This document shows, one piece after another, positions 36,293-63,510 of a DNA stretch of 64,000 nt. The notes under the pieces were generated by a model. The model had not been told where the DNA came from. It searched no databases and saw nothing but the letters and a program-made list of their open reading frames with translations. The DNA comes from Paraphysomonas bandaiensis. Lineage: Eukaryota > Protista > Chrysophyceae. The stretch spans positions 1-64,000 of the forward strand of contig CBFFRP010000068.1 of NCBI GenBank assembly GCA_965644295.1. The letters run 5' to 3'. The first letter of the stretch is position 1. The number at the start of each line of letters is the position of its first letter. Both the position numbers and the translations under genes were made by a program.

Positions 36293-36610
36293 ATGTATGT
36301 ATGTATGTACGTATGTATGTATGTATGTATGTATGTATGTATGTATGTATGTATGTATGTATGTATGTATGTATGTATGTATGTATGTATGTATGTATGT
36401 ATGTATGTATGTATGTATGTATGTATGTATGTATGTATGTATGTATGTATGTATGTATGTATGGATGTATGTATGTATGTATGTATGTATGTATGTATGT
36501 ATGTATGTATGTATGTATGTATGTATGTATGTATGTATGTATGTATGTATGTATGTATGTATGTATGTATGTATGTATGTATGTATGTATGTATGTTTGT
36601 ATGTATGTAC
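36293..36610. repeat. (ATGT)n microsatellite, ~80 units
   Basis: Direct reading; lies between divergent genes. Confidence 0.97.
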
Positions 36611-36689
36611 GTGCTTCTACAGGTATATATATTTAAAGTAAGTTATCACAATATCAGTGTATTCAATCTAACACTACACACATTCAAAT

Positions 36690-37424
36690 ATGACCGACAA
36701 TGACCCATCAAACAATCCCCCTTCATCTGAACCTTCTAATAAACCAATTAAACGTAAACGAGAAAAAAGTAACTGTAAATCTGTTGAATTAATGGACTTA
36801 GAGGGGAATGTCTTACAAGTCTATCCAAGTGGTATAGCAATGGCTACAGCACTTGGTATACAACAAGGAGATATTAGTTTATGTTGTCGTGGATTAAAAT
36901 ATAGTGTTGGTAATTATCGTTTTAGATTTCATGGGGATACAGAGGATCAATATGAGGTCATGCAAAGACGTAAGAAAGAGATGAGAGAGCAAGCATTAAC
37001 AGTACCTAAAGAATTAAAAGATTCATTTAATAATCCTGAACCATTATCACGTACAAGACGTAGAACAACAATTAATTATGGTGATATGGGACTTGGAGAA
37101 TATGGGGAAGCGACAGAGTCGGGAGTGACACATCAGAGCACACATACTAAAGGCGCCCCCCCGAATTTAAATAATGTGAAAGAAGTCAAAGTAAGTGATT
37201 TTAGCACGTATATTTGATTAATCTGTTATGCCTAACTTTTATATGTGTACATCCAGGTAAGGAAGTGGAGAAAGGACACCAATGTAAAAGTAGGAAAAGG
37301 AACCTTCACTATTAGTAGATGGGTGCCCCAAGGAGGGACGAATCCGGCTTTCAAGGCCTTTTTGCCTAAGAAAACCAAGAAGAAACGGTACGAGCGGAGG
37401 AAGTCCCACACTTATGACAATTAG
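36690..37424 (+). CDS. Putative nuclear protein: NUMOD1-like HTH plus C-terminal BCL7-like motif (exons 36690-37190, 37257-37424)
   Basis: KSVELMDLEGNVLQVYPSGIAMATALGIQQGDISLCCRGLKYSVGNYRFRF; VK|VRKWRKDTNVKVGKGTFTISRWVP; basic NLS-like tracts. Confidence 0.8.
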
Positions 37425-39382
37425 ATACGTGTTGCTAAGCTGGAGGTGCTGTTGCCCTTCAGTATTTCTGCTGTATGTAATATTTACTAGCTGTATCTAT
37501 ATTGAGGGCGTATAAATATAAAGAACTGAATTGTAGGACTGGTATGGCATGAAATATACCAGTTTGTAATAATTGCGATACGGCACGAGAAATCTTGGAG
37601 AATTTCACACTCCGCGTTTTTGTTTCCTATTCATATGAAGTGCTAATACAAGCCTTCCTCCAATGTATACTGTATACATATATGCTATAGAAAGCCCCGA
37701 TAATTTTATTATTCCTCTAACTGAACTTGAACTCACTTAATATAGTTATATCTAATCATGGGTTATAAGGAGGATATAACGCCCTGTGCTCATAGTTTTG
37801 AAGCGAGGGCTAAAAAGCCAGAGTTTTAAAACTTTGACAAGGGATGATACTCTTTTTGCCTAGGTTTAATAGTAGATTATCACCATGATGTCGTAGACCT
37901 ACTATTTAGTACTTATAATATGTTGCTATCTTGCTGGTAGTGGAAATAGCTATTCCCTGAACAATATTTAGAGAACAAAAAAATTCAAGTATAGTTTCTA
38001 ATCAATTACACCTACACAATAAATGAATGGCAACTATGCTAAACTAAATCCAAACAATAAATTCCAACTGTACCCTATTCCCAGAAGGATGTTGAGGGAA
38101 TGGCAACTGCGAGGTATAAAAACTTGCGGAAGTGAGTTTTCCATGAATGTGAAAAATCTTAGTCGCTAGAAGCTTTTTGCTGTCACTTGTATCATCGTTA
38201 TCATCACAATTTACCCCTTCCATTGCAGCTGACTCAAACGCGTTTATCTTTATAGGGACAACAGAACCTATTTAACGTACAGTTCTGTTACCCATCATGT
38301 GCTTAGATGCAGACTCAACTCCACTTAAAGTGCAGATCACATTCTGGCCATAATTGAGTTTACGTGACAAATCCTTTATATCCTGTGTACATTAATGGTG
38401 TCGGAAGCCCGAAGTCTCGGCAATTCCCATCCCATAGTTTGATCTTAATTGTTTTCAATGAAATTGCTACAATAATTTATCGAAATGTGTTGTAAGCTTA
38501 CAAAAAAATGACCTGCACATCTAGAGGTAACCAGTTGTTGAGAGTACATAACCATACTTCACGAGGAAAATCAGTAATATAATTATCAAGAGATTCAATT
38601 TCAAGCATGCCAGATATTATTTGCCATGTACGGTCTGTGTTTCAAGAGAACTGGCGTGTAGTTAGCAGTGACTTATTTGGTCTGCGGGGCCAGTGCACTT
38701 GTGCGAGTTTTTGTAGTAGAGAGACGCTAATACTGTGCTACAAAGTATACTGTCAAAGTTTGGGTAAATTAATAGCTTTGCTCTTGATTACCGAGATGTT
38801 CCTTTTAAACGAGTAGGCAACTGTAAACATATATTTTCCCATTTACTCTGATTAGTTTCAACATTATCAGATCTCCACGGCCAGTAAAAGCCCTAAAACT
38901 TCCATCTTCTCATTGCTGTTGGTGATTATAATTATATTAATCTGAATACTTCACTTCTTCACTTTCATGTAACATCTGGTACATCACCTGTTCTCAGCAA
39001 CACCTGTTTATCATATGTTCACGAGTCACACCTATATCTTATATAGTCATACATTAATAACTGAATTTAATTCCTTAATAACTGTAATCACCCGTTACAC
39101 CTATGAGTTGACTTAACCTATTGCACACTATTCACTCACTTCAATTGCACACTATTAACTCACTTCAATTGCACAATATATAATATATATCACATCATAT
39201 TGCAGAACTCAACATTATATATACTACAGTTTTCAAGTACTGTATTCTTAAACTACTAAAAGTCAAATACCTAAAAATATATCTATTAAGTGCTTACGGG
39301 CTTACAAGTAAGCAAAACTCAACAAGCATGATATCAACGCACAACAACCTGCTGCAATGTGCATCTAAAGTGATATATATTA

Positions 39383-62482: not shown

Positions 62483-63134
62483 TGTATCATATCATTCGTT
62501 GTAATAGTACTACATTTTATGCACAATGTAATTTCATGTTTACTAGTCATGTGTACTGTATTATGATCTTTAAATGAATTGTATAGTTTAACTGATATGA
62601 ATGGACTGGAAAATGCAATGATTTTTCCTGTTAAAGTGGATATGCGATGGCCCTCAATGTAGTAAACAGAACATAGTTGGACAAGACTATTCACCAGGTC
62701 AGAGTATTCCTCAGTAGCAGAAAAATGAATTACAGCTTGTAGGTTCAATTGATGACTTTCACAACCTAGAAGAGGTACAGAGAGCCCACATTACTCTTAC
62801 TGTATGGTTAATGTAGCCATATTAGGGTTGCAAACATGTCACAAAGAACAAGTTCCACACAACTGAAGCCCAATCCCGTTAACTGTAACTCGCCAAAACT
62901 ATAATCTCCGATGTAGTAAATAATGTGGGAATCCTCATCTTCATATTGGACTCCACTGCATAACAACACTTGTTGCACAACTCTTTGTCCGAAAACCGCA
63001 AACACAACTCCTCGATATTAACGCTAACAGATAAACCAAATGTGATAGGTTTAACCAAATGTGTAACATTTTCTTAAGGAGAGGTATATTCTCTATCGAC
63101 AAAAAGAATGATGTAGATATTTATAGCCACCCAG

Positions 63135-63510
63135 TTGCACCAGTGATACACATTTCAGGCGTAATAAGGCGACACCGTTCTCTTGACATTAGTAGCTTAG
63201 CAATAGGCGTTTAAGGGTCAGGAGTAATATAGCTATTAACTAAATAGTGCTTAACTCTTATATGCTATTATTTAACGCTACAAAAGCTACTTGAGCGCGT
63301 CACCGCAAGCACCTAGGTGCAACCACGTTTTCGCTCTATCACTCAATGCTAACGGAAATAGCAAGCACGACGTTGATACTCCTGACTTATGCTGACTTCA
63401 GGATATTTGAGTCCTTAAAGTAAACAGTCCGGATGCTTTACTTCAGCAGGTAGCCCAATGTCCCGAATGCTTTGAGGTGGGCCCATTCCTGGATGCCTGT
63501 TTATTCATCC
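63135..63510 (-). repeat. Repeat family A, copy 4
   Basis: Reverse complement colinear with 5225-5450 and 5648-5935. Confidence 0.8.

Follow-up and report, generated by a model that had tools for sequence, protein, structure and literature searches.

Alterations of BCL7 proteins are frequent in lymphoma, and only recently was it resolved that within the SWI/SNF chromatin remodellers these proteins serve as an anchor on the nucleosome acidic patch and a clamp on the module of actin-related proteins (ARPs). Arginines R4, R7 and R11 of BCL7 bind the acidic patch, and residues 26-51 form the hairpin that bridges the ARPs (PMC13279755); in plants, the hairpin tryptophans of BDH1 are needed for ARP7 binding (PNAS paper). 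A phylogenomic survey of SWI/SNF subunits places BCL7 in animals, Dictyostelium and plants and leaves stramenopiles unmentioned, and a 2026 review terms BCL7 unique to multicellular eukaryotes. [quoted passage not shown] The gene described here joins these two elements. It lies at positions 36690-37424, forward strand, of a 64,000-nucleotide window (positions 1 to 64,000 of contig CBFFRP010000068.1, assembly GCA_965644295.1) from the unicellular chrysophyte alga Paraphysomonas bandaiensis, and its spliced product carries an HTH module of the homing-endonuclease kind in front of a unit homologous to the N-terminal unit of BCL7. We think it probable that the gene encodes an ochrophyte-algal form of the BCL7/BDH (SMARCJ) subunit of SWI/SNF, with an HTH added by the lineage and a proposed three-contact mechanism of action.

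Spliced transcript and two domain homologies

Translation of the open reading frames gives a gene of two exons. The coding part of exon 1 (36690-37190) runs from its ATG over 167 codons and holds, in order, a low-complexity N-terminus, the HTH domain, a helix, an arginine motif, a linker and K167; exon 2 (37257-37424) adds 55 codons and a TAG stop at 37422-37424. Between them lies a 66-nucleotide phase-0 intron (37191-37256, GTAAGT...CAG, separating K167 from V168) that contains an in-frame stop. Exon 2 begins VRKWRKDTNVKVGKGTFTISRWVP, and the K167 codon (37188-37190), the last of exon 1, joins it to give KVRKWRKDTNVKVGKGTFTISRWVP, that is, KVRKW...WVP. The junction 37190/37257, a GT..AG skip of 66 nucleotides, is present in one assembled contig from each of three runs in three studies: X1 (36667-37584), X3 (36670-37590) and X7 (36661-37488), all on the forward strand and all skipping 37191-37256, where X3 is a polyA marine metatranscriptome and X1 and X7 are organism-labelled and only guessed to be RNA. 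These contigs place the approximate ends of the mRNA at 36661 and 37590. The same product is found as a 222-residue MMETSP open reading frame marked complete (P0001), which is 100% identical to exon 1 over residues 1-167 and equals the two exons joined except for V178A; exons were searched apart, and whole-protein steps used P0001, which differs from the window product at that one residue. The original prediction had proposed both this junction and an arginine tract upstream of the hairpin: the splice junction is real, and the tract is RTRRRT at 37050-37067.

Upstream of the gene stands an (ATGT)79 microsatellite (98% matches, window 36293-36609). It ends about 50 bp before the first transcript base, 36661, and so sits in the promoter region, where changes in its length could affect expression of the gene.

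The C-terminal block is homologous to the N-terminal unit of BCL7. A profile of nine C-termini, run against 177,635 distinct PDB sequences, gave as its top three matches BCL7A (E 8.5e-4), BCL7A again (8.8e-4) and BCL7B (2.9e-3), and a profile of 23 C-termini taken from fusion proteins only gave BCL7A (2.5e-4) and BCL7B (1.1e-3); the next match outside BCL7 stood at E 0.073 with the nine-sequence profile and 0.63 with the 23-sequence profile. Among 1.84 billion representative proteins the nine-sequence profile found 81 at E <= 1e-3, and Pfam annotation of 75 of these returned BCL_N in eight (best 3.9e-8), NUMOD1 in eight, I-HmuI_NUMOD-like in six and a single marginal CCDC90-like match. Profile-profile comparison with hhalign aligned the 23-sequence profile to P0109, a protein of Colponema vietnamica that itself scores 33.5 bits with BCL_N, above the gathering score, with 95.3% probability and E 2.1e-8 over 51 columns. 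The likeness reaches significance with family profiles, which it requires, and a VanA_C match of exon 2 alone (E 0.18) was set aside as spurious.

Structure prediction points the same way. An AlphaFold2 model built on the alignment of 23 sequences has hairpin strands at residues 170-178 and 185-192, with a predicted local distance difference test (pLDDT) score of 84, and Foldseek places this hairpin on BCL7A of the ncBAF ARP module (9wc1_C: 27 columns, root-mean-square deviation (rmsd) 1.8, 44% identity), with 9wbz_O matching too. The BCL7-type hairpin, delimited by profiles, hhalign, AlphaFold2 and Foldseek, is encoded at 37257-37328, directly after K167; of its two tryptophans, W189 is invariant, and W171 is replaced by phenylalanine in three of 23 fusion proteins. 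An NPxF/LQ..LPKK block and basic tail follow (residues 192-222 and the stop, 37329-37424), kept both in the fusion and in stand-alone relatives. Upstream, the arginine motif RTRRRT (residues 121-126) is a candidate acidic-patch anchor; among the 23 full-length fusion relatives, whose consensus is RTTRASRGEY, R124 never varies and R121 hardly ever does.

The N-terminal block shares homology with the HTH domains through which HNH and GIY-YIG homing endonucleases bind DNA. The module, of beta1-beta2-alpha1-alpha2-beta3 order, occupies residues 30-80 (36777-36929, forward strand), as located by Pfam, AlphaFold2, Foldseek, VIA and tblastn. The model, with pLDDT about 97 over residues 30-100, has strands at 32-35, 41-45 and 76-80 and helices at 48-55 and 59-66, the second helix (QGDISLCC) being the predicted recognition helix. 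Foldseek gives I-HmuI (1u3e) as the best PDB match for the HTH model (E 9.5e-4), and VIA-align Z scores are 8.9 for I-HmuI (1u3e), 7.3 for Paulinella sCTP-23166 (8b6e) and 6.0 for I-TevI (1i3j), with 51 of 52 residues aligned to 8b6e at an rmsd of 1.8. When residues 24-104 were searched by tblastn against 50,697 phage records, 55 matched (best E 3e-4; 31-42% identity over 55-71 residues), and the 15 listed among these 55 carry HNH homing endonuclease, I-BasI or NUMOD4 annotation, bar one unannotated record. Neighbours in the ESM Atlas, which are a lead only, are all NUMOD1-bearing phage endonucleases.

Pfam is more reserved about the same block. NUMOD1 (PF07453) matches residues 30-65 of the window protein at E 0.0098 and 16.6 bits, under the gathering score of 22.8; in a Pfam scan it matches eight of ten relatives at E 0.001-0.2, and the I-HmuI NUMOD-like family (PF22083) reaches 31.3 bits in relative P0009, above its gathering score of 27, and 25.8 bits in P0028. 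An earlier call of NUMOD1 from the sequence pattern is thus upheld as to fold and homing-endonuclease similarity, and falls short of the family threshold in the window protein itself. No HNH, GIY-YIG or other nuclease family was matched in the protein or its ten relatives (Pfam, E <= 10). A further predicted helix at residues 87-103 (36948-36998, pLDDT 92-97) follows the HTH and corresponds to a basic, KLKRG-type block in the relatives. Within the recognition helix, Q59, D61, S63 and C66 are invariant in 23 of 23 fusion proteins, as is R67 just after it; these positions vary among the Paulinella sCTPs (PMC10319021). Such constancy fits a single unchanging DNA target, or contact of a generic kind, better than diversified targeting of loci, and by analogy with the systems above the second helix would bind DNA in the major groove.

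The fusion among relatives and in the host genome

The four-block architecture of HTH, arginine motif, hairpin and basic tail is shared by 23 proteins that fall in different 50%-identity clusters; the taxon labels, which are few, name as holders of the fusion Epipyxis sp., Ochromonadaceae sp. CCMP2298 (KAJ1421107.1) and Spumella/Pedospumella (A0A7S3HSC3), all chrysophytes. The xanthophyte Tribonema (KAG5191582.1) and Colponema carry the unit alone; a homologue search with the Colponema protein P0109 returned only itself. Short stand-alone relatives start M..RTTRASRGE and continue, 20-30 residues on, with KVRKW...KWVP...P[TN]..LQ. Since this is the layout of BCL7, the fusion consists of an HTH and a complete BCL7-like unit, and goes beyond a W...W motif. 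The intron position is also conserved: relative L015, about 40% identical over the aligned part, reads SIK, then GTTTGT...TAG, then SRTWHTEAVKAGPFTIEKWIP, and relative L016 has the same donor.

This conservation has a cost for annotation. Most database models (P0002, P0003, P0005, P0013, P0024, P0031 and many others) end a few residues after IKV; gene callers read into the conserved phase-0 intron, so that the BCL hairpin is usually lost, which may explain why the fusion went unnoticed. Literature searches found BCL7 together with neither NUMOD1 nor diatoms or stramenopiles, and found nothing on eukaryotic chromatin in work on NUMOD1. The suggestion that an undescribed joining of NUMOD1 and BCL7 is present here stands: both halves pass independent tests, the junction is real, the architecture is kept in 23 proteins, and no such combination was found in the literature searched.

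One relative departs from the common plan. P0009 (234 residues) has two tandem HTH modules, each matching PF22083, followed by an arginine-type motif, and ends ...TNIKV plus KLTL; it represents the fusion with a doubled HTH, and the gene caller probably dropped its hairpin exon.

The assembly comprises 62.6 Mb in 669 contigs, with short GT..AG introns, microsatellites and many silicon-transporter genes above the Pfam cut-off, and the window has about 38% G+C. PF04714, the BCL_N family, found no match in six frames of the whole genome, so the family's own profile was needed; with the C-terminal profile, the window locus is the sole BCL-type locus detected. Core SWI/SNF genes are present in the same genome: SNF5 (97.9 bits), four HSA matches and two SnAC matches. 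HSA and SnAC lie 2-2.5 kb apart at C362:312326-315095 (reverse strand) and C253:144865-147531 (forward strand). These loci represent either a pair of Brahma/Snf2-type ATPase genes or a single such gene in two haplotype copies, and their products are likely the partners of the BCL7-like protein.

The HTH module is multi-copy in the genome, with further instances on C210, C380, C369 and C28. An exon-like stretch on C210 (about 63005-63193; L002 1480-1668, reverse strand) encodes 62 residues 76% identical to residues 29-96, without beta1, and is flanked by ...gcag before and gtatgt after, no second BCL-type exon having been detected in the genome. The stretch is a piece of a pseudogene or else belongs to a diverged paralogue made up of small exons. 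On C380 (L003 637-3075, forward strand), an 812-residue open reading frame holds four NUMOD1-like modules (SACCRG...GYRWRF and similar) with acidic or serine-rich spacers between them and AT-hook-like RGRKKK stretches. On C369 (L010 14-2801, reverse strand), near-identical genes of 280-341 residues, each with two NUMOD1-like modules, repeat in tandem about every 881 bp, and at least three copies in 3 kb point to recent amplification. The original prediction's domesticated mobile-element module is supported in its homing-endonuclease homology and needs amending in its scope: the module is not peculiar to this gene and belongs to a multi-copy nuclear domain family.

A proposed mechanism and its rivals

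The subunit reading can be set out as a sequence of contacts. The C-terminal half consists of the arginine motif RTRRR (RxxR), a flexible linker, the two-tryptophan hairpin KVRKW...WVP and the basic tail, and in front of this BCL7-like unit the lineage would have added an HTH such as phage HNH and GIY-YIG endonucleases carry at the C-terminus. By analogy with BCL7 and BDH, the hairpin would grip the actin/ARP pair seated on the HSA helix of a Snf2-type ATPase, and the arginine motif would dock on the nucleosome's H2A-H2B acidic patch. The HTH, which lies upstream of the arginines by about 40 residues, could then touch the major groove of nucleosomal DNA or of linker DNA next to it, so that the ARP module would gain a third tether, directed at DNA. 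That the protein belongs to SWI/SNF, that it binds the acidic patch, and that it binds DNA with some specificity are the putative elements of this scheme; the combination of HTH and BCL7-like unit may give a remodeller a built-in DNA contact.

A bolder proposal, possible but to be held only tentatively, is that the HTH reads sequence, so that the ARP module itself would pick out a DNA element that is conserved, or a set position on nucleosomal DNA. If true, such an arrangement would provide a direct route of DNA targeting through the BCL7 subunit, absent from every described SWI/SNF complex, and would indicate that the place of BCL7 between acidic patch and DNA can grow into a real DNA-binding arm. 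The protein is also a natural variant with a folded, putatively DNA-binding domain directly before the arginine motif, and as such offers a test of the position of this subunit relative to DNA. For the host, the work yields a candidate SWI/SNF subunit, together with a family of DNA-binding domains not listed before.

Several observations weigh against assigning the gene to the BCL7 subunit of SWI/SNF. Neither exon 2 nor P0001 has a Pfam BCL_N (PF04714) match, and in relatives P0004 and P0038 BCL_N, whose gathering score is 25 bits, scores 14.9 and 12.5 bits over profile positions 25-48. Alignment to BCL7 is significant over about 25-50 residues, and no tool aligned the arginine motif to BCL7 R4/R7/R11; as these arginines were never aligned residue by residue, their anchor role is proposed by likeness of layout. 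At the other end of the protein, a sequence profile of the N-terminal module had no meaningful match in the PDB (best a leucine-rich repeat (LRR) protein, E 1.5), which is why fold comparison and tblastn were needed. Beta-hairpin binders of ARPs exist outside SWI/SNF too. The finding of a single BCL-type locus comes from six-frame searches made exon by exon, which a second, divergent BCL gene could escape.

The rival that survives best accepts the BCL7 homology as real and takes the protein to be a chromatin or transcription factor that binds DNA and has its hairpin on an actin/ARP module of another HSA-containing complex (INO80, SWR1 or NuA4), or that works outside remodellers altogether. We consider this unlikely, though it has definite points in its favour: only two of the four HSA matches in the genome adjoin SnAC; ACT-ARP-HSA modules are common to INO80, SWR1 and NuA4, and hairpin proteins discriminate between ARPs (PNAS paper); and this genome encodes other large proteins of nuclear type in which the HTH module recurs. 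Against it, every characterised BCL-domain protein (BCL7A/B/C, BDH1/2) is a SWI/SNF subunit, the gene is the sole one of BCL type found in the genome, and the core SWI/SNF genes are there.

That the resemblance to BCL7 arose by convergence or chance in a short basic tryptophan motif, leaving one more member of the NUMOD1-like family with a lineage-specific tail, is less probable again. The shortness of the aligned core, the sub-threshold Pfam BCL_N scores and the modest PDB E-values (2.5e-4 to 1e-3) would suit such an account, but BCL7A/B are the only significant PDB matches of two different profiles, the library-wide search brings in BCL_N, NUMOD1-type domains and one marginal CCDC90-like match and no other family, and hhalign gives 95% probability. 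The order of arginine motif, spacer, hairpin and basic tail is also that of BCL7, intermediates that begin with the arginine motif exist, and the predicted hairpin superposes on BCL7A. The earlier proposal that the C-terminal W...W motif resembles BCL7 accordingly finds support in the profiles, in hhalign and in its retention among relatives, and finds none in Pfam BCL_N. A decayed homing-endonuclease gene, persisting as a mobile-element remnant or passenger without host function, has phage HNH endonucleases as the nearest sequence relatives of the HTH and transposons nearby in the window to recommend it, but was rejected as very improbable given that no nuclease domain was found, the spliceosomal intron holds a conserved position, the spliced form occurs in a polyA metatranscriptome, the BCL part is single-copy in the genome, and the full-length architecture is kept between the window protein and its chrysophyte relatives.

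Comparison with described systems

Returning to the reading of the gene as a BCL7/BDH-type subunit, its HTH half is best compared with homing endonucleases of the I-HmuI/I-TevI type, with which it has in common the beta1-beta2-alpha1-alpha2-beta3 fold and an IS.C.xG...G[YF].[FW]R[FY] signature. Unlike them, the window protein has no nuclease domain, other NUMOD modules or intron/intein context, and its gene is nuclear and spliced. Paulinella chromatophora sCTP-23166 (8b6e) is in this respect closer, being a eukaryotic, nuclear-encoded, nuclease-free HTH protein, and one that binds DNA experimentally. The sCTPs, however, are stand-alone, organelle-targeted proteins with a variable recognition helix, whereas the HTH described here is fused and its helix is nearly invariant. 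It would be the second case, after Paulinella, in which a homing-endonuclease HTH has been recruited for eukaryotic host functions.

On the side of the remodellers, yeast Rtt102 is a small hairpin protein that stabilises Arp7/Arp9-HSA and has been suggested to be a structural analogue of BCL7/BDH; it shows no similarity to the window protein in sequence, and has neither an arginine anchor nor a DNA-binding domain. Plant BDH1 and BDH2 offer a nearer parallel as BCL-domain proteins outside animals with a lineage-specific N-terminal domain before the hairpin. That domain makes contacts within the complex and is not an HTH of NUMOD1 type, and the tryptophans are differently spaced (W28/W77 in BDH1).

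Animal BCL7A/B/C (PF04714; SMARCJ of BAF, PBAF and ncBAF) remain the closest counterparts of the C-terminal half, as they too carry an arginine-rich motif, comparable in layout, and after it a KVRKW...KWVP hairpin and a basic or disordered tail. Two differences of layout separate them. The BCL7 unit stands at the extreme N-terminus in the animal proteins, whereas in the window protein it begins at about residue 118 and forms the C-terminal half, behind a folded DNA-binding domain; and the spacer between arginine motif and hairpin is about 40 residues long here, against about 15 in BCL7. The third difference is one of host: the gene belongs to a unicellular alga and so extends BCL-domain proteins to unicellular stramenopiles, contradicting their restriction to multicellular eukaryotes.

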